IMG/VR virus record: IMGVR_UViG_3300028558_000016
Span: 372,001 to 436,000 of that record
Length of the DNA: 64,000 nucleotides
Reading direction: 5' to 3' (one strand)
In this document: in pieces, positions 13,294 through 50,255 of the stretch
Numbering within the stretch: position 1 is the stretch's first letter
How the letters are laid out: each line of letters opens with the position of its first letter
Position numbers and translations under genes: made by a program
Notes under the pieces: model-generated
The model's database searches: none
Seen by the model: the letters and a program-made list of their open reading frames with translations, nothing else
Told to the model about the DNA's origin: nothing

Positions 13294-14010
13294 ATGAAAA
13301 ACTTCGACGAATTCTCAAACAGCATAAGGATCAATGAATCCGAAATCAAATTCTTAAATGAAGATGAAACAGAGCTTAATCAGCTTGGAATAGAACTTAC
13401 CAATTACATGGAAGATCAAGGAATTAAGTTTCCTGCATTCGACATTAAAAATGGAGTTCTTACATTAGATATGGCTGGAGAAGAGATTCACATAAAACCA
13501 GAACGTCAGGAATATAGCACTGGACATGGAACTCATCCAGGTTACGTTGTTTCAATGAAGCACAATCCCGATGAAAAGGTTGAAGACATTTTTGGATGGT
13601 TAGCAAGACACGTTTCTGCGTACCAACACGGTGAAGGAGAATATCATCACGAGACTTGGGTTGAAAAAATGAGAGACAAATTTGCAAGTCAGGCTGGAAT
13701 GGATGAAGGAATAGGATTGCTTCCAGATGAAGGACCATTCAAAGGAAAAACACCTGCAGAAAGAGTAAAGAACTATGCCAAGACATTGAACAAGAATAAG
13801 GTTGACAGAAAGGATGCAGAAGATTTTAATACTCTTTTGGGAATGATTGCTAAAAAAGATTCTGCAGCACAGGATTTCTTTTGGAATTTAGACACTTCGG
13901 TTAGGGATACTTTTGCGTCCGCTTATATTAATAGAGCAGATGGTAAGATCCTTGATATGGATGCCAAGAAAGAACTTTCTTCTTTATTAAAAGTAAGTAT
14001 TTCAAAATAA
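13294..14010 (+). CDS. hypothetical protein (possible internal virion protein)
   Basis: MKNFDEF...INES...LNE; ATATATAG upstream. Confidence 0.6.
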   Translation: MKNFDEFSNSIRINESEIKFLNEDETELNQLGIELTNYMEDQGIKFPAFDIKNGVLTLDMAGEEIHIKPERQEYSTGHGTHPGYVVSMKHNPDEKVEDIFGWLARHVSAYQHGEGEYHHETWVEKMRDKFASQAGMDEGIGLLPDEGPFKGKTPAERVKNYAKTLNKNKVDRKDAEDFNTLLGMIAKKDSAAQDFFWNLDTSVRDTFASAYINRADGKILDMDAKKELSSLLKVSISK

Positions 14011-14080
14011 ATTTTTTAGTTTCAAATATAGTGCCTATATTTGCATTGTAAATAAAACTGAAACAAAGAAAGATATATAG
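14008..14080 (+). promoter_or_regulatory. conserved operon promoter block
   Basis: TTTTTTAGTTTCAAATATAGTGCCTATATTTG...GAAACAAA..GATATATA. Confidence 0.65.
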
Positions 14081-14186
14081 AATAGAAGTAGAGATTGTGA
14101 CGCTACCCTTTGACAAATGATTAAGTAGAGTACGGGGTTTAATCTGAAAAAGCAAACCAATCGAAACTTCAAACATAATAACGAAC

Positions 14187-14276
14187 ATGAGATTTAATAA
14201 TAATAATCAGCAACAGTATCAACAGAATAATTATTCTGGTTGCGTGTTATTATTTTCTCCTGTCTCTGTTGATTGA
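14187..14276 (+). CDS. attenuator leader peptide, Asn/Gln/Tyr-rich (29 aa)
   Basis: MRFNNNNQQQYQQNNYSGCVLLFSPVSVD*. Confidence 0.85.
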   Translation: MRFNNNNQQQYQQNNYSGCVLLFSPVSVD

Positions 14277-14337
14277 CAGTTAAGATTTTAAGAGAATAAC
14301 ACGCAACCCGAACCGAAACGTTCGGGTTTTTTATTTT
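14238..14337 (+). terminator. attenuator: antiterminator and intrinsic terminator
   Basis: GGTTGCGTGTTATT(14238-51)/AATAACACGCAACC(14295-308), 14 bp, overlaps terminator AACCCGAAC-CGAAAC-GTTCGGGTT-TTTT. Confidence 0.85.
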
Positions 14338-19914: not shown

Positions 19915-19919
19915 ATAAA

Positions 19920-19960
19920 TAATTTTTCTGGTTTAAAAATAAGTGCCTATATTTGTATTC
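19920..19960 (+). promoter_or_regulatory. conserved operon promoter block
   Basis: TTTTTCTGGTTTAAAAATAAGTGCCTATATTTG. Confidence 0.6.
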
Positions 19961-19978
19961 AAGTTGAAAATCTTTAAG

Positions 19979-20032
19979 GGTTGCATTCAGCATAACAAAT
20001 CATCTACAAAATGAAACCAAAAGCAATCTGAA
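19979..20032 (+). ncRNA. CAGCA-motif structured element, copy A
   Basis: GGTTGC-ATTCAGCATAACAAA...GCAATC-TGAA. Confidence 0.55.
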
Positions 20033-20087
20033 GAATTTCAATGAAACAAAAAAGAAAAAAGATATATAACATAAGATATTAAAAAAA

Positions 20088-20142
20088 GGATGCGTTCAGC
20101 ATAACAAACTTACAATTGAAAAGTAAACCAAGGCATCCTGAA
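20088..20142 (+). ncRNA. CAGCA-motif structured element, copy B
   Basis: GGATGC-GTTCAGCATAACAAA...GCATCC-TGAA. Confidence 0.55.
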
Positions 20143-20155
20143 AAATTTTAAAGAA

Positions 20156-20248
20156 ATGAAAAAAGTAAATAACATAATCCCGCAGTTTCAGTTTGTGGTG
20201 CCGTTTAGCGGTTCCAACGGGCGTGTTATGTACTTTGACGATTTGTAA
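20156..20248 (+). CDS. attenuator leader peptide, Pro/Phe/Val-rich (30 aa)
   Basis: MKKVNNIIPQFQFVVPFSGSNGRVMYFDDL*. Confidence 0.8.
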   Translation: MKKVNNIIPQFQFVVPFSGSNGRVMYFDDL

Positions 20249-20298
20249 AAGAAAACGTTAGACAACAGAAAGCCCGGTGGAAACATCGGGCTTTTTTT
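20218..20298 (+). terminator. attenuator: antiterminator and intrinsic terminator
   Basis: CGGGC(20218-22) can pair GCCCG in the 5' arm of AAAGCCCGGTG-GAAA-CATCGGGCTTT-TTTT. Confidence 0.8.
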
Positions 20299-22864: not shown

Positions 22865-23404
22865 ATGAAAGCAGTTTATATTGGCGAATACGTCAAAGAA
22901 AAAATGTTCGATAGGTTATTGAACGAAGTGGCCTGGGCCAATAAGGAAGCTCCAAGAGACGAATGCTTTATGGCATTGGAATCTTTGGAATATACTTATG
23001 GAAAAGGATTCACAAGAACGTACACTTCTTTAGAAATGCACGTTGAAGTGTTGGGCATCATGAAAAAGATGAACGACGAAATGGGAACCGAGTATAACGT
23101 TTGCTTCTTGAATTATTACAAGAGCGAAAAAGAACACTTAGGTTGGCATGCAGATGATTCTCCTGAAATGGATGAGACACACCCAATAGGTGTTGTATCA
23201 TTTGGAGCTGAGAGATACATTTGGACGAAAAATAAGGACTACAGGGGAAACATTCCTGATGAAGATAAGTATTTATTAGGGGATGGTTCTTTGTTTATCA
23301 TGCCTGCAGGTTTCCAAAAGGATAACTTGCACAAGATACCAAAGAATGACAAACCTTGTGGAGGAAGAATTAGTTTAACATTTAGAAAATTCATAAACAA
23401 ATGA
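22865..23404 (+). CDS. AlkB-family 2OG-Fe(II) dioxygenase
   Basis: NYY...GWHADD...H.IPK...RISLTFR. Confidence 0.9.
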   Translation: MKAVYIGEYVKEKMFDRLLNEVAWANKEAPRDECFMALESLEYTYGKGFTRTYTSLEMHVEVLGIMKKMNDEMGTEYNVCFLNYYKSEKEHLGWHADDSPEMDETHPIGVVSFGAERYIWTKNKDYRGNIPDEDKYLLGDGSLFIMPAGFQKDNLHKIPKNDKPCGGRISLTFRKFINK

Positions 23405-24045
23405 GAAGATTTAAAATAAAACAAACAGAAGACCAGCGGGTCTATTACACGTCGGACACCCATTATGCGCACGCGAATATGTGTCGCGGAGTTTCGCAAT
23501 GGGGCGACCTGGATAACAGCACGAGGAACTTCAAAACTCTAATAGAGATGAACAACGAACTTGTGAATGCGATCAATAGAACCGTTAGGCCCAAAGACAT
23601 ACTCTTCCATTGTGGAGACTGGTCGTTTGGAAACGTGAGCAACGTTGCGGAGTTCAGGAGAAGAATACATTGCGAGAATGTGCACATCATATACGGAAAC
23701 CATGATGATCACATAGAAGACGATGAGACCCTACATGGGCATTTCTCTTCTGTACAACATTACAAGGAATTGGCAATCGATGGAGATATGCTTTGCTTGT
23801 TTCACTACAAGCAGACTATATGGAATAAAAGTCATCGTGATGCTTATCACTTGTATGGTCACTCGCACGCAGGTGCTGAACACATGGTTAACGGAAGATC
23901 CATGGATGTTGGAGTTGACAACGCTTACAAGTTGCTTGGAGAATACAGACCTTTTTCTCACGAGGAAGTTTTGTACTTCTTGAAAGGAAGAAAACAGAAA
24001 GCCATAGATCACCATGGCGCTAAAGGTACTGAGTCACACAAATGA
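23401..24045 (+). CDS. calcineurin-like metallophosphoesterase
   Basis: SDTH, GD, GNHD, GHSH. Confidence 0.9.
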   Translation: MRRFKIKQTEDQRVYYTSDTHYAHANMCRGVSQWGDLDNSTRNFKTLIEMNNELVNAINRTVRPKDILFHCGDWSFGNVSNVAEFRRRIHCENVHIIYGNHDDHIEDDETLHGHFSSVQHYKELAIDGDMLCLFHYKQTIWNKSHRDAYHLYGHSHAGAEHMVNGRSMDVGVDNAYKLLGEYRPFSHEEVLYFLKGRKQKAIDHHGAKGTESHK

Positions 24046-24665
24046 AACAGTATCCGTCCATATCCCATTATGATGATTCGATGATCGGAACACCGATGCT
24101 CGCATTCAACAAGATTGACGGAAGCAATCTGCGGTTTGAGTGGAGCAAGAAGAAGGGATGGAATAAATTCGGAACAAGAAGAACCATACTAAATGAAAAA
24201 GATCCACTCTACATCGGAGTGGATCTTTTCTTATATAAATATGCTAACAAGCTTGAGGAGATATTCAAGGACGATAAAGATTTCAGAGGAATAAGAGAAG
24301 TTGTTGTATTCTGTGAGTTCTTTGGGCCAAACAGCTTTTATGGACAGCATGATTTCATTGACATGGATGTCGTCTTGTTGGACGTCAATCCAATGACAAA
24401 GGGATTCATAAATCCAAGAGAGTTCGTAAAGAAGTTTGGAAAGCTTGGAATTCCTGAAATAGTTTTTGACGGAATATTAACGGCTGAGATGGTTGATGAG
24501 ATCAGAAATTCTGATTTAAAAGAAGGTGTGGTGTGCAAGTGGAACAACAACAGACATCTGCATACGGCAAAGATCAAAACTTATAAATGGCTCAATGAAT
24601 TAAAAGCAAGATATGGGCAGGAAGCATTGGACGAAGAATTTGGAAACATTAAATTAATATCATGA
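24042..24665 (+). CDS. RNA ligase-like nucleotidyltransferase
   Basis: KIDGSN motif I, EFFG, EGVV, KIK. Confidence 0.75.
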   Translation: MKQYPSISHYDDSMIGTPMLAFNKIDGSNLRFEWSKKKGWNKFGTRRTILNEKDPLYIGVDLFLYKYANKLEEIFKDDKDFRGIREVVVFCEFFGPNSFYGQHDFIDMDVVLLDVNPMTKGFINPREFVKKFGKLGIPEIVFDGILTAEMVDEIRNSDLKEGVVCKWNNNRHLHTAKIKTYKWLNELKARYGQEALDEEFGNIKLIS

Positions 24666-41121: not shown

Positions 41122-41542
41122 AGGTGACATATTAGTATGCAAGCCTGGATATTGGGGACATGAAGATAATCCAGCAAAATCAGATAATGTAAGACCAAAA
41201 GAAAATCCAACTTATGGTGGAGCAGGGTACATAGATGGATTAATGCAAAAAGCATCATCAAGCTATAATGGTGAAGATCCATTTGATCTTCACGTTTTTT
41301 GGAAATTTCACAATGAAGCTGGAGTATTTTCAAGAGCTGTAAGACTTGCAAACGAAGAAGAAAAGAAAGCGTATAAAGAAGGAATAAGAAATGCTAAAGA
41401 TATTCAACGAACAACTTTCAAAATATCATACGTTTCCATTGATGGTGAAAACAAGAATGTTGAAGTAGAAGCTTTTTATGAAACTGCCGCAGTAAGCTCC
41501 ATAAAAGATTTAAAACGAGTCAATTATGTCATTTCTGGTTAA
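41108..41542 (+). CDS. hypothetical protein with shared C-terminal F.I.Y module
   Basis: FKISYVSIDGENKNVEVEA...IKDLKRVNY. Confidence 0.6.
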   Translation: MRINEGDILVCKPGYWGHEDNPAKSDNVRPKENPTYGGAGYIDGLMQKASSSYNGEDPFDLHVFWKFHNEAGVFSRAVRLANEEEKKAYKEGIRNAKDIQRTTFKISYVSIDGENKNVEVEAFYETAAVSSIKDLKRVNYVISG

Positions 41543-41551
41543 TAGAGAAAA

Positions 41552-41631
41552 TAAATTTTTTAGTTTCAGAAATAGTTCCTATATTTGCAGATATAAACAT
41601 TGAAACAATTTTAAAAAGAAAAGGTATATAG
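41552..41631 (+). promoter_or_regulatory. conserved operon promoter block
   Basis: TTTTTTAGTTTCAGAAATAGTTCCTATATTTG...GAAACAA...GGTATATAG. Confidence 0.65.
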
Positions 41632-41638
41632 TTTAGAA

Positions 41639-41745
41639 GATTGCTTACAGCAAAACAAAATGGTTAAAGAATCACCGAAAGGTGGTTTTTTCGGTTCGAT
41701 CCCGAAGCTCTGAGATTACATCAATGAGTTTTAAGGCAATCTGAA
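41639..41745 (+). ncRNA. CAGCA-motif element enclosing a tRNA-like core, copy C
   Basis: GATTGC-TTACAGCAAAACAAA...TGGTTAAAG...GGTTCGATCCC...GCAATC-TGAA. Confidence 0.55.
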
Positions 41746-41766
41746 AGACATTAGAATAACAATACA

Positions 41767-41850
41767 ATGAAGAACAGGAATCACATACACAAGCATCAGA
41801 TATGGCATAGAGATATGTCGGGCTTGGGTGTTACCTGTACTTTGAAGTAA
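41767..41850 (+). CDS. attenuator leader peptide, His/Trp (27 aa)
   Basis: MKNRNHIHKHQIWHRDMSGLGVTCTLK*. Confidence 0.85.
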   Translation: MKNRNHIHKHQIWHRDMSGLGVTCTLK

Positions 41851-41906
41851 GTATTGGTTATTTACGAAAGTAAAACCTCAAGGCCTAAAACCTTGAGGTT
41901 TTTTTT
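41823..41906 (+). terminator. attenuator: antiterminator and intrinsic terminator
   Basis: CTTGGGTGTT can pair AACCTCAAG; terminator AAAACCTCAAGG-CCTAAAA-CCTTGAGGTTTT-TTTT. Confidence 0.82.
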
Positions 41907-41914
41907 ATTTACAT

Positions 41915-41997
41915 ACGTCGGTGTCCGAGCGGTCAAAGGTAGCGGTCTCCAAAACCGCGGAGTTTCTCCATCGTGGGTTCGAATCCTACCCGGCGTG
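41915..41997 (+). tRNA. tRNA-Trp(CCA), long variable arm
   Basis: GCGGT-CTCCAAA-ACCGC; G73; GGAGTTTCTCC arm. Confidence 0.88.
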
Positions 41998-42018
41998 CAA
42001 AAATTAAAAGAAGAAAAC

Positions 42019-42363
42019 ATGAATGCAACAGATGTGAAGAAAGAGCTTTACAAAAGCAAAGTGACAGCAAAGTTAACAGACATTGTTAATGGAACAATGT
42101 TTTATTCTGTTCAATTGGAAGATGGCTTATATCGTTTCCCAATAGTTCAGGTGAAAGAAGTTGGTGGACCATTATACAGGCTTGAGGCAAAAACACAAAC
42201 AAGCCCAACAGTTTCTTTGACGTACACGAAACTCGAAGAGAAATGTTATTCACTTTCTTCTGATCTCGGAAGCACTCCTTTCTATCCTGAAATGAAAGCT
42301 TCTGAATTAAACAGGTGGATTGAAAAGGCAATAAAGGATGGAGAGTTTGTGAAGTTGTATTAA
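42019..42363 (+). CDS. hypothetical protein
   Basis: MNATDVKKELYKSK..., start placed after the tRNA. Confidence 0.65.
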   Translation: MNATDVKKELYKSKVTAKLTDIVNGTMFYSVQLEDGLYRFPIVQVKEVGGPLYRLEAKTQTSPTVSLTYTKLEEKCYSLSSDLGSTPFYPEMKASELNRWIEKAIKDGEFVKLY

Positions 42364-42373
42364 TGGAAATTAT

Positions 42374-42463
42374 GGTGCAGGTATCCAAGGGGTTGAAGGG
42401 ACCAGGCTGTGGACCTGGTTGAAGCGAAAGCTGAACACGCGAGTTCGAATCTCGTCTTGCACC
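42374..42463 (+). tRNA. tRNA-His(GTG), long variable arm
   Basis: G-1:C73; CCAGG-CTGTGGA-CCTGG; AGCGAAAGCT arm. Confidence 0.85.
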
Positions 42464-42468
42464 CACAT

Positions 42469-42543
42469 GTGGATTGTAGCTCAATGGTAGAGCGCTGGTT
42501 TGTGGAACCAGATATGCGGGTTCGATCCCCGTCTTTCCAACCA
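42469..42543 (+). tRNA. tRNA-His(GTG)
   Basis: CTGGT-TTGTGGA-ACCAG; G-1, A73; two U.U mismatches in the acceptor stem. Confidence 0.8.
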
Positions 42544-42552
42544 AAAGAAGCA

Positions 42553-43185
42553 ATGATGAAAGAGTTAAAGTTAGATAGCACGTACAAAGGAACGAGAATT
42601 CTTGTAGGAAACGAGAAGCGTGGAATGATCAATGACATGGTCATGATTTTATTGAATCAAGGCTTCACTGAGATTTCCATTCCGATCATTCAGTTGCAAG
42701 AAACATTTGCAGGAAAGGTTGGAGAAGAAAATAACAATCTAATGTTCAATTTTAAAGATCGTGGAGAAAGGAATGTTTGCTTGGCTCCTGAATACACAGC
42801 AGTGATTCAACAATTGGCAAAGACGAAATACAAACAAGAAAAGGACGTAAAGCTTTTCTATGTGCAAGAATGTTTTAGAGGAGAAAAGCCTCAAGCAGGA
42901 AGATACAGACAGTTTACTCAATTTGGAGTTGAAATTTTAAATCCAAAGAAAGAAACTATGGAAGGATTAAAAGAATTAGCCGTCAGCCTTTTGTCCGGTT
43001 ATGATTTCAAATTCAACGTCAACAGTGATGTGACGAGAGGTTTGGATTATTACAAGGACGGAAAAGGATTTGAGATCACATGCGATGAGCTTGGATCAAG
43101 CAAACAGATTTGTGGTGGAGGTTCTTATGAAGGTGGAATGGGTTTTGCAATTGGAATTGATAGGATATTAAAAACACAGTCATGA
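42553..43185 (+). CDS. hisS: minimal histidyl-tRNA synthetase (catalytic core only)
   Basis: LAPEYTA, FRGEKPQAGRYRQFTQFGVE, RGLDYY, GGGSY, GFAIGIDRI. Confidence 0.9.
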   Translation: MMKELKLDSTYKGTRILVGNEKRGMINDMVMILLNQGFTEISIPIIQLQETFAGKVGEENNNLMFNFKDRGERNVCLAPEYTAVIQQLAKTKYKQEKDVKLFYVQECFRGEKPQAGRYRQFTQFGVEILNPKKETMEGLKELAVSLLSGYDFKFNVNSDVTRGLDYYKDGKGFEITCDELGSSKQICGGGSYEGGMGFAIGIDRILKTQS

Positions 43186-43935: not shown

Positions 43936-44020
43936 GGGCGTGTACCGGTGGAATCTTATACATTCTATACCCGTAGTCTGGTCGTTGAAAACGGGGGTTC
44001 AAATCCCTCCACGCCTACCA
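43936..44020 (+). ncRNA. D-arm-less rearranged tRNA-like RNA, anticodon TAT (Ile)
   Basis: GGGCGTG/CACGCCT+ACCA; GGAAT-CTTATAC-ATTCT directly after the acceptor strand. Confidence 0.6.
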
Positions 44021-44830: not shown

Positions 44831-45113
44831 AAAGTTCGGTGAGTTAAACGAGGGTGGATTAGGTTATGAAAACAACAAAACGCTTCCTCCATCTGGGACA
44901 CACATAAAATATGTTGCTGACACAACAGATCCAAAGACCAAAAAAATTCTCAAGATTATTTGGAATTCATGGGACGAGGCAAAAAGGAAACAGATGCTTA
45001 ACAAAATGGGACACAGCGAAAAGTATTTTGATGCTTCTTTTGAAGACCTGACAGGAGAGATCCAAGGAAAGATCGTAATGCTTGATGCCTCATTGCCAGA
45101 AAACAAGCGATAA
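44817..45113 (+). CDS. hypothetical protein with capsid-targeting-like N-terminus
   Basis: MKNLKKFGELNEG. Confidence 0.6.
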   Translation: MKNLKKFGELNEGGLGYENNKTLPPSGTHIKYVADTTDPKTKKILKIIWNSWDEAKRKQMLNKMGHSEKYFDASFEDLTGEIQGKIVMLDASLPENKR

Positions 45114-45115
45114 AA

Positions 45116-45190
45116 TAAATTTTTTAGTTTCAAATATAATACCTATATTTGTAAAAGATTAAGAAACAAAGAAAACCGCAAGGTATATAA
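45116..45190 (+). promoter_or_regulatory. conserved operon promoter block
   Basis: TTTTTTAGTTTCAAATATAATACCTATATTTG...GAAACAAA...GGTATATAAG. Confidence 0.65.
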
Positions 45191-45197
45191 GATACAA

Positions 45198-45281
45198 ATG
45201 ATGAATACAGTAAATATTACCCGAATTATTAGGATTAGACGCAGATCAGCGACTCGCCTGGGTAGTATTATTTTATCATGA
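45198..45281 (+). CDS. attenuator leader peptide, Ile/Arg-rich (27 aa)
   Basis: MMNTVNITRIIRIRRRSATRLGSIILS*. Confidence 0.85.
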   Translation: MMNTVNITRIIRIRRRSATRLGSIILS

Positions 45282-45345
45282 AAGTTTTAAGGATTTAGAA
45301 AACTATGAATGGAATAAGCCCAGGACGAAAGTTCTGGGCTTTTTT
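45257..45345 (+). terminator. attenuator: antiterminator and intrinsic terminator
   Basis: CCTGGGT(45257-63) can pair GCCCAGG(45318-24) of AAGCCCAGGAC-GAAA-GTTCTGGGCTT-TTTT. Confidence 0.85.
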
Positions 45346-45827: not shown

Positions 45828-45973
45828 ATGTCCTTAGCTCAGTGGTTAGAGTATTATGCTGATAAAAGGTTTTAGATCTTGTAATGGAAAAATATCACGG
45901 CTCATAACCGTGGTACCAAAACAAAAATTTAAAATGCACATAAGGGTCGGTGGTTCGAATCCATCAGGACATG
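45828..45973 (+). tRNA. tRNA (GAT) with about 73-nt insert carrying a nested CAT anticodon arm
   Basis: ATGTCCT/AGGACAT; TTATG-CTGATA[insert with CACGG-CTCATAA-CCGTG]A-CATAA. Confidence 0.65.
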
Positions 45974-46236: not shown

Positions 46237-46326
46237 GCCCGTGTAGCCGAGGAAGTTTTCTAAACTTTTATCCGTAATTGGAGCTGCGTCTCACGACTAA
46301 TGGGGGTTCGAATCCCTCCACGGGTA
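46237..46326 (+). ncRNA. D-arm-less rearranged tRNA-like RNA, anticodon TCT (Arg)
   Basis: GCCCGTG/CACGGGT; GAAGT-TTTCTAA-ACTTT right after the acceptor strand. Confidence 0.62.
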
Positions 46327-47562: not shown

Positions 47563-48519
47563 ATGGCAACCAAAACATCTAAAGCCGCAACAGGAACCGT
47601 GAAAGCACGAACAGCAGGAAGAAAAGCAACGACATCAACAAAGACACCAATGAAAGCAGAAACTACATTGGAACCAAAAAAGGCCTCGAAGATTAAAATA
47701 AGTGGAAAAGAAGTTACATTGAACGGGTATTTTAAAATTGAATTGGGAACCTTTTCGATTTTAAAGCACAACATCCGAAACAACATAAGCACTCTTTTAA
47801 TAGGTCCAACAGGACTTGGAAAAACAGATGTCGCAGTTAACATTGCGTCTGTGCTCGATGTTCCTATAACCATATTTGATATGGGAACGATGACTGACCC
47901 CATCATGGGACTTGTTGGAACTCACGTCATAGAGGTTAAAGATGGAAAAACATATTCTGAATTCAAGAAAAGCAGATTCTCTGACGTCATCCAAAAACCA
48001 GGAATAGTTTTATTGGATGAGGTCAATCGTGCTGCATCAGCCGCTAACAACTTATTATTTCCTTGTTTAGATTTCAGAAGAGAGCTTCCAATGGAATATT
48101 CGTTTGGAGATACTAAGCCAATTCCAATTCATCCTAAATGTGTTTTCTTTGCAACGGCAAATATAGGATCTCAGTATACCGGAACTCACAAGCTTGACAG
48201 AGCATTAATCGATAGGTTCATGATTATTGCAGTTGATAGTCTCAACACTCAACAAATTATGTCCACGTTAGAAGTGACTCATTCTAAATTAAGTGAGACT
48301 GACAGAAAAAAGATTGTTGACATTTACAACAAGATAAACAAAGAGCATGACGATTTCAAAATAGGTTTCAATTTGTCAATACGACATTTGAAAACTGTTG
48401 CGACACTTGTGCAAAACAAGTTCACGATATATGATGCGTATTATGCAATATGCAAAGGACTTGGTGGACCAGAAGGATTAAAAGCTATTGAATCGATCTT
48501 AAGCACCTCTAAAAAATGA
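47563..48519 (+). CDS. MoxR/CbbQ-like AAA+ ATPase
   Basis: GPTGLGKT, LLDEVNR, ATAN, LDRALIDRF. Confidence 0.9.
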   Translation: MATKTSKAATGTVKARTAGRKATTSTKTPMKAETTLEPKKASKIKISGKEVTLNGYFKIELGTFSILKHNIRNNISTLLIGPTGLGKTDVAVNIASVLDVPITIFDMGTMTDPIMGLVGTHVIEVKDGKTYSEFKKSRFSDVIQKPGIVLLDEVNRAASAANNLLFPCLDFRRELPMEYSFGDTKPIPIHPKCVFFATANIGSQYTGTHKLDRALIDRFMIIAVDSLNTQQIMSTLEVTHSKLSETDRKKIVDIYNKINKEHDDFKIGFNLSIRHLKTVATLVQNKFTIYDAYYAICKGLGGPEGLKAIESILSTSKK

Positions 48520-50255
48520 TAGGATTTGATATTACAGGAAAGAAATCAAAAAGCGTAACTAAATGGGAAGACTCATTGTTTGGAGGCTATTACAGAACTG
48601 TAATGGATTACCCGGACGTGAAAGTTCACAGCAACGTTGATTTTGATTTTGGAACCATAGCGTATGGAAGTTACTTTTTAAAAGAGAAGATCTTGAAGAT
48701 TTTCTTATCTAAGGTTAAAACACACGGTTACACTACAAAGCTTTTGGATAACTGTACTGTCGAAAGAAAACGAGATGCATGGGGTGATGAAATCACTGAG
48801 GCCACCGTAGATAATAACAGCAAGCTCAGTACAATAAGAGCTGTGATTGCAAGAGAACCAGAGTTTGCTCCTATGTTTTCCCATTATATGAAGTTTATAA
48901 TGGACACCAGAATTTACTTTTACAAAAGCAATTCTAAAGCTCCAAGCAATGGGACTGGTTCTTCAGACGACGATTTTGAAGAATTTAAGGATGAAAACGA
49001 AAATGACGAATCATCCGGAAAATCAGAAGAAGAAAAATCTAAAAACGGAAACTCCGGTAAAGGCAAAGAGAAAGAGAAAGAAGAAGAGAAACCAGAAGAA
49101 ACCAAGGATGAAAGCTCTGGTGATGGAGAAGGAGAAGAAAAAGAGGAGCCAGAAAATTCCGAATCTGATGGTTCAAATTCTGAAGAAGAAAAGGAAGAAG
49201 AAAAAGGAGATGGAGAAGGAGAAGGAGAAGAAAAATCTCCAGAGGATAAGGCGTTGGAAGATAAATTAGAAAAAGAACTTGAGAAAAGGAAACAGGAAAT
49301 AGAAGAACGAGAACAGAAGGCAAAACAAAAACCTGTCAAAAAATTAACTCAGGCTGAAATAAATCAAATCCAAGAATCTTTCAAAAAGGCCATTCAAAGT
49401 ATAGTTGAAGAGTCCATTGTTCATAGCTACATTTCAGGATTTAAAAAACCTGTTAAAGTAATTTTTGAACGACCAAATGTTAGAGACACTGAGTTTAATT
49501 ACGAAGACAAAAGAATAGCCGAGAATCTCGTTAAGATGCTCGACATTTCATTTGACCCAGCGAAAGAAATAGTAAAGAACTTGCGTCTTGGCAAATTGGA
49601 CATATCAAAGATTGCAGAGGTTCCAGCCGGAAATATTGCCATATACAAGCAGGATGTGGAAAATCAAACGACTAAACCATTTAGCATTGTAATATTATGT
49701 GATGAGTCAGGAAGCATGGGTTCTGGACATGAATACAAAGGACGTGGCGATAAATTGTATTCGCAATATAGAATAGTCAAACAATTGTACTTGGCATTTT
49801 CTGACATCATTCCACAGAATAAACTCTATGTGTATGGACATTCGGGATCAGAAGAACCTGAGCTTTATGTTTATCAAGATTCTTATCGTCCAAATTTTAC
49901 CAAGACGATTGATCACATGATCCACAACCATAATCACCATTCCAATTATGATGGACCTGCAATAGAAGAAGTTTACAATCAGGTAAGAAATTCCACCGAT
50001 GATAGAATAATTTTTATTTGTCTTTCTGATGGTCAACCTGCTGGAAATAATTATGGAGGTCACGATGATCAATTGAAAATGAAACAAATAATTGAAAAAT
50101 GTAAGAGGGATGAATTCGTGACTGTTGGTGTTGGAATTCAATATTTCACCGTAAAGAATCTTTATCAATACAGCACGGTGGTAACTGATCTGGATGAAAT
50201 GGCTAAGAAAGTGAGTCACATAGTCAATCACGTGGTCAAAAGTGAGTTTCAATAA
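48516..50255 (+). CDS. VWA-domain partner protein with acidic linker
   Basis: DESGSM MIDAS, LSDGQP; E/K/G-rich linker. Confidence 0.85.
   Translation: MIGFDITGKKSKSVTKWEDSLFGGYYRTVMDYPDVKVHSNVDFDFGTIAYGSYFLKEKILKIFLSKVKTHGYTTKLLDNCTVERKRDAWGDEITEATVDNNSKLSTIRAVIAREPEFAPMFSHYMKFIMDTRIYFYKSNSKAPSNGTGSSDDDFEEFKDENENDESSGKSEEEKSKNGNSGKGKEKEKEEEKPEETKDESSGDGEGEEKEEPENSESDGSNSEEEKEEEKGDGEGEGEEKSPEDKALEDKLEKELEKRKQEIEEREQKAKQKPVKKLTQAEINQIQESFKKAIQSIVEESIVHSYISGFKKPVKVIFERPNVRDTEFNYEDKRIAENLVKMLDISFDPAKEIVKNLRLGKLDISKIAEVPAGNIAIYKQDVENQTTKPFSIVILCDESGSMGSGHEYKGRGDKLYSQYRIVKQLYLAFSDIIPQNKLYVYGHSGSEEPELYVYQDSYRPNFTKTIDHMIHNHNHHSNYDGPAIEEVYNQVRNSTDDRIIFICLSDGQPAGNNYGGHDDQLKMKQIIEKCKRDEFVTVGVGIQYFTVKNLYQYSTVVTDLDEMAKKVSHIVNHVVKSEFQ

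Follow-up and report, generated by a model that had tools for sequence, protein, structure and literature searches.

The His/Trp leader and the tRNA operon downstream

We analyzed a 64,000-nucleotide stretch (the window) of the IMG/VR virus record IMGVR_UViG_3300028558_000016, a 482-kb viral contig. The window carries 25 tRNA genes on one strand, grouped by amino acid, together with several synthetase genes. Its nearest GenBank relatives are the 635-735 kb "uncultured phage" genomes LR745206, LR756501 and LR756502, which belong to the Mahaphage clade predicted to infect Bacteroidetes (PMC7162821). A short ORF rich in His and Trp codons lies directly in front of the tRNA-Trp and tRNA-His genes, and the following features were found at and around this locus (cassette A3), all on the + strand.

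41547-41587, promoter-like box ending in what appears to be the Bacteroidota-type -7 motif TAnnTTTG (TATATTTG at 41580-41587)
41602-41631, second conserved box (GAAACAA ... GGTATATAG)
41670-41691, weak hairpin plus T6, followed by a T-arm-like sequence
41767-41850, leader ORF of 27 codons, ATG to TAA
41769-41794, segment 1
41782-41808, putative regulatory run, codons 6-14, with four His, one Trp and two ATA (Ile) codons
41821-41843, segment 2
41872-41906, intrinsic terminator (segments 3 and 4) with a 12-bp stem and a T8 tract
41915-41998, tRNA-Trp(CCA), 84 nt with a long variable arm
42019-42363, ORF of 114 aa with no family match
42375-42464 and 42470-42543, two tRNA-His(GTG) genes, the first being 90 nt long
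42553-43185, HisRS-like catalytic core of 210 aa
43182-43913, TrpRS-like catalytic core of 243 aa
43936-44017, atypical tRNA-like gene of uncertain identity
44053-45113, three ORFs without family assignment, ending at the promoter of the next cassette

The leader reads M K N R N H I H K H Q I W H R D at its start, with His at codons 6, 8, 10 and 14 (CAC, CAC, CAT, CAT) and Trp (TGG) at codon 13. Thus, the initial annotation was correct in claiming four His and one Trp within nine codons, followed by a terminator, tRNA-Trp and two tRNA-His genes. To check how rare such a run is, we counted codons in the long ORFs of the window, where His plus Trp make up 3.3%. The binomial probability of at least five in nine is 4e-6 per position, and only 2 of 510 short ATG ORFs (15-45 codons, both strands) reach that density. 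In six frames, only 108 of 127,924 13-codon windows hold at least five codons read by the downstream tRNAs.

The leader ORF is followed after 21 nt by a stem-loop (41872-41902; 12 pairs, loop of 7) that runs into T8 (41899-41906), with a predicted energy of about -16 kcal/mol. The tRNA-Trp gene starts 8 nt after the T tract, so no promoter fits in between. The promoter-like box is nearly identical in all five cassettes of this phage. Its pattern with up to 3 mismatches occurs three times in the window, against zero expected by chance, and a slightly diverged fourth copy lies at 19915-19955. The second box (GAAACAAA ... GRTATATAR) is also present in every cassette (41602-41631, 14056-14080, 20041-20069 and 45165-45190 in the window, and about 8272-8295 of L010, a locus of the same contig outside the window), but its spacing from the promoter box and from the leader start varies from 10 to 130 nt. 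It might be a second promoter or a processing or ribosome-loading site. The weak hairpin plus T6 within the roughly 170-nt 5′ untranslated region, followed by a T-arm-like sequence (TTCGG TTCGATC CCGAA) within 41670-41720, could be a tRNA remnant or a weak upstream terminator.

The initial annotation named HisRS and TrpRS genes downstream. The two ORFs match these families (Pfam tRNA-synt_His, 8e-17, and tRNA-synt_1b, 1e-36), and their best PDB matches are HisRS and TrpRS, respectively. However, both homologues are short catalytic cores without anticodon-binding domains, so their activity is unproven. The TrpRS-like protein keeps the HIGN and KMSKS motifs but lacks the C-terminal ~90 aa of canonical TrpRS. 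Interestingly, the HisRS-like (210-211 aa) and TrpRS-like (237-246 aa) proteins are conserved at that size across several huge phages (loci L003 8001-8714, L004 8007-8726 and L005 7994-8629), and they look like a minimal synthetase form and not like pseudogenes.

Predicted alternative pairing of the leader transcript

Folding the untranslated leader transcript, we find segment 1 (41769-41794), which contains the first His codons, paired to segment 2 (41822-41843), and the terminator formed. We then masked the RNA up to 12 nt past the ribosomal A site and truncated it before the terminator 3′ arm. In that state, 41821-41832 is predicted to pair with 41874-41885, that is, with 10 of the 12 nt of the terminator 5′ arm. 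The 5′ strand of this antiterminator starts about 12 nt after the last regulatory codon. The initial annotation had proposed that the distal leader elements CTTGGG and TACTTT..GTAAGTA pair with the region up to and including the terminator 5′ arm. CTTGGG does pair with the arm, while TACTT and AAGTA pair with each other in a local hairpin of the predicted antiterminator and do not pair with the terminator region.

Stepping the ribosome codon by codon, the expected fraction of the terminator 5′ arm tied up by upstream sequence is 0.82 with the A site on codons 6-15. This fraction drops to 0.39 at codon 16 and to 0.15 at codon 18. Dinucleotide shuffles of the upstream part give 0.56, and 8 of 200 shuffles reach the observed value. 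The energy is -22.3 against -15.6 kcal/mol (z = -2.3). Taken alone, therefore, the A3 antiterminator is only moderately better than shuffles. The collapse of the antiterminator 1-3 codons after the regulatory run is seen in most of the first 16 family members, while two are weak or irregular. This is the geometry of the classical model, in which a ribosome stalled on the run leaves segment 2 free and a ribosome that has passed covers it.

Sibling cassettes and leaders of related huge phages

The decisive support is comparative. The cassette of conserved promoter box, leader and terminator occurs four more times in this phage, three times on the + strand of the window and once in L010.

14003-14332, cassette A1, leader 14187-14276 with the run N N N N Q Q Q Y Q Q N N Y and terminator 14305-14332, before tRNA-Asn x3, Gln x3 and Tyr, then TyrRS, a Glu/GlnRS and a GatB-like gene
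19915-20298, cassette A2, leader 20156-20248 with the run P Q F Q F V V P F and terminator 20269-20298, before tRNA-Pro x2, Phe x2 and Val x3, then a class II ProRS-like gene
45111-45345, cassette A4, leader 45198-45281 with the run I T R I I R I R R R and terminator 45316-45345, before tRNA-Ile and four Arg isoacceptors, then an ArgRS-like gene
L010 8055-8445, cassette A5, leader 8307-8378 with twelve alternating Leu and Ser codons and terminator at about 8407-8437, before four Leu and four Ser tRNAs

In A4, the Arg codons are CGA, AGG, AGA, CGC and AGA, which between them call on all four isoacceptors. In the table of the five leaders against the five tRNA sets, the diagonal is the maximum in every row and column. 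A3 is the least dense leader of the five, with 5 of 9 cognate codons interspersed with Lys, Gln and Ile, and at the amino-acid level it discriminates only slightly from the Ile/Arg set (0.31 against 0.25).

A tRNA-Ile(GAU) at 45828-45973 has a 74-nt insertion in the anticodon loop (Rfam 48.7 bits) and was missed by ARAGORN. The tRNA-like genes at 43936-44017 and 46237-46326 were found only by Rfam (33-35 bits) and have almost no D arm and a 23-30 nt extra region. Their anticodon loops read UAU (Ile-AUA) and UCU (Arg-AGA), and each sits in the operon whose leader contains those codons. Both Ile codons of the A3 run are ATA, so the AUA decoder might also belong to the A3 circuit. However, ARAGORN calls the gene at 43936-44017 (33.8 bits) only at low stringency and as something else, and we treat this idea only as a lead. 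A suppressor tRNA with anticodon CTA (reads TAG) lies at 2278-2351, although the ORFs of the window look intact in the standard code. A MoxR-type AAA ATPase followed by a VWA-domain protein (47563-50255) lies within the Ile/Arg operon, between the ArgRS-like gene and tRNA-Arg(TCT).

Performing a mechanical scan (hairpin plus T run, short ATG ORF ending within 70 nt upstream, tRNAs by ARAGORN) over the window and 50-kb stretches of LR756501, LR756502 and LR745206, we found 15 terminators with tRNAs within 1 kb downstream. Strikingly, all 15 carry a leader enriched in codons read by those tRNAs. Examples are Y N D Y C I N D before Ile, Cys, Asp, Asn and Tyr tRNAs, a leader using all six Leu codons before Leu(UAG, GAG, CAA, UAA), and I S V G V I A I G A G before Ile(UAU), Gly and Ala. 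For isoleucine, the match holds at the codon level, as leaders before tRNA-Ile(GAU) use ATT and those before tRNA-Ile(UAU) use ATA. IMG/VR loci fetched through the Glu/GlnRS and the TrpRS-like protein added many more leaders. Trp travels with different partners, and the leader follows each time: with His only in this window, with His/Phe/Lys(/Ser) as K H S K H F S S S S K W F and its variants, and with Ser/Arg as R S W S W R R S S S S S R.

Over 34 non-redundant leaders, the fraction of residues 4-19 cognate to the downstream tRNAs is 0.54, against 0.17 ± 0.03 when leaders and clusters are permuted (0 of 10,000). The distal 45 nt of each leader ORF pairs more stably with its own terminator 5′ arm than with the other 33 (-0.89 against -0.58 kcal/mol per arm nt; 0 of 10,000), and A3 ranks first of 34 for its own arm. 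The related leaders are not phylogenetically independent, so these numbers overstate the count of independent events, but the reshuffled clusters show repeated re-matching all the same.

We also looked for a close orthologue of A3 to assess base-pair covariation. The TrpRS-like protein found only the source contig and one locus without tRNAs, and a profile search found 12 more loci, all with rearranged clusters and different leaders. Thus, there is no base-by-base covariation for this particular copy. Aligning the A3 leader with seven His-containing leaders of relatives (K-H-K-H-F-S-K...K-W-F), we find the TGG invariant, while Lys, Phe and Ser codons are replaced in the window, where those tRNAs are not in the cluster. 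This plain alignment does not put the pairing strands in register, and we therefore relied on the permutation of cognate against non-cognate duplexes. A promoter-box search in IMG/VR returned only the five cassettes of this contig and a family of about 25 small viral contigs (L048-L074) that share the same downstream sequence (first ORF MPVSRL) and are unrelated to tRNA genes.

A putative leader-peptide attenuator of phage tRNA genes

The above observations support, with high confidence, the proposal of the initial annotation that 41767-41906 is a ribosome-mediated attenuator, although its function is inferred from sequence only. We propose that transcription starts at the promoter-like box and a ribosome translates the 27-codon leader. 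If charged tRNA-His and tRNA-Trp (and possibly the AUA decoder) are plentiful, the ribosome would run through codons 6-14 and cover segment 2, the terminator would form, and transcription would stop 8 nt before tRNA-Trp. If decoding of these codons is slow, the ribosome would stall on the run, segment 2 would stay free to pair with the terminator 5′ arm, and RNA polymerase would read through into the tRNAs and the HisRS-like and TrpRS-like genes. The new charged tRNAs would relieve the stall, closing a negative feedback loop, and shortage of any one of the amino acids sharing a leader would open the operon. The trigger could be a mismatch between the host tRNA pool and phage codon demand, host tRNA decay, or tRNA-targeting defence.

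Short ORFs are abundant in the window, and terminator-like sites as a class are not enriched in a simple scan of 36-54 kb (11 found, 10.2 expected), so a chance reading frame before a constitutive terminator or an RNA-processing and stability element might be considered. We find this very unlikely, because a dedicated conserved promoter-like box lies upstream of the ORF, the tRNAs can only be expressed by read-through, and chance cannot explain 34 leaders whose composition follows the downstream tRNAs or the cognate-specific pairing with the terminator arm. A leader sensing general translation capacity (ribosome or initiation availability, or timing of infection) is also unlikely, though somewhat less so. 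Any attenuator of this build depends on whether a ribosome occupies segment 2, the N-terminal part of the leaders (M-K-x-x-N-like, A-rich) is shared across cassettes, and the A3 run is interrupted by non-cognate codons. However, a general sensor needs no codon identity, yet codon content changes with the tRNA set, down to ATT against ATA for the two Ile isoacceptors and one codon per Leu or Arg isoacceptor.

A T-box-like riboswitch, or another RNA- or protein-mediated antiterminator with an incidental ORF, might control the terminator, as T-boxes typically control aaRS genes through a terminator/antiterminator choice and sense the same signal, tRNA charging. We consider this highly improbable. 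Rfam at gathering threshold on the whole window gave only tRNAs, and no T-box hit appeared at E up to 10 on 41540-41915. The best hit there scores 24.9 bits against a gathering score of 59 and is driven by the terminator. The 5′ region is not conserved among cassettes apart from the two boxes, and the conserved variable is codon content in one reading frame. The leaders are 17-43 aa and always begin with a similar N-terminus, which might point to a functional micropeptide or a nascent-chain arrest peptide, but we hold this to be remote, since the peptides are not conserved beyond composition and where the run ends relative to the antiterminator.

The enterobacterial his and trp leaders (hisL, trpL) share with A3 a short leader ORF with His or Trp codons, four pairing segments (1:2, 2:3, 3:4) and an intrinsic terminator, and the geometry is comparable, with about 98 nt from the last regulatory codon to the end of the T tract. 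In A3, one leader combines His and Trp, the promoter-like box appears to be of the Bacteroidota type, and the regulated genes are phage tRNA and synthetase-like genes instead of biosynthetic enzymes. There is no covariance-model similarity either, as His_leader and Trp_leader do not appear in the Rfam search and Phe_leader reaches only 18.8 bits against a threshold of 55, on the terminator. The attenuated synthetase operons (E. coli pheST with leader pheM; comparative predictions by Lopatovskaya et al. 2010, cited in PMC4833913) also apply attenuation to the charging machinery, with the cognate charged tRNA as the signal, but they control protein genes only, while here the first and main products are the tRNAs themselves. 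The ilvGMEDA (Ile/Leu/Val) and thr (Thr/Ile) leaders likewise appear to mix codons for several amino acids. In the phage family, the mix is set by which tRNA genes lie downstream and is reshuffled as clusters are rearranged. T-boxes follow the same logic but bind tRNA directly without a ribosome. Grouped phage tRNAs and synthetases are known from T4-like, jumbo and huge phages (PMC7162821), a study in whose text the terms "attenuat", "leader" and "terminator" do not occur.

We found no report of attenuators before phage or bacterial tRNA genes in full-text searches that did not cover most subscription journals. In E. coli MG1655, the promoters of the tRNA-Phe genes pheU and pheV abut the tRNA, with no leader ORF or terminator, and lysQ of Lactococcus, mentioned in PMC4833913, is a permease and not a tRNA gene. 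It is likely, though less certain than the A3 attenuator itself, that huge phages of Bacteroidota run their imported translation apparatus as self-tuning modules, each transcribed only when ribosomes stall on the codons its cluster decodes. This would be the first case of tRNA genes controlled by attenuation and of a virus sensing decoding capacity codon by codon. Phage tRNA genes are usually treated as constitutive codon-usage helpers. Such attenuators would instead mean that the phage pays for extra tRNAs and charging enzymes only when needed. They would extend attenuation to viruses and to a phylum where it is little studied, make the question of why huge phages carry dozens of tRNAs and partial synthetases directly testable, and supply compact (about 140 nt) codon-specific sensors for synthetic biology. 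Leaders rewritten whenever tRNA clusters are reshuffled also provide a natural experiment.

The system may serve as a response to host tRNA depletion or anticodon-nuclease defence. In support, a metallophosphoesterase and an RNA ligase lie inside the Pro/Phe/Val operon, where together with an AlkB-like 2OG-Fe(II) oxygenase (22865-24665) they look like an RNA or tRNA repair module. Interestingly, relatives (L007 27600-27765 and L008 25085-25184) carry a 14-codon leader with H, T, Y, K, N, D and W codons, a perfect 9-bp antiterminator and a strong terminator, with no tRNAs downstream. In L007, the genes that follow are an RNA ligase, a mini-HisRS and a second RNA ligase, and in L008, a mini-HisRS follows. 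As His, Tyr, Asn, Asp and Lys tRNAs are probably the classic targets of anticodon nucleases, this leader may be a damage-sensing switch for tRNA repair.
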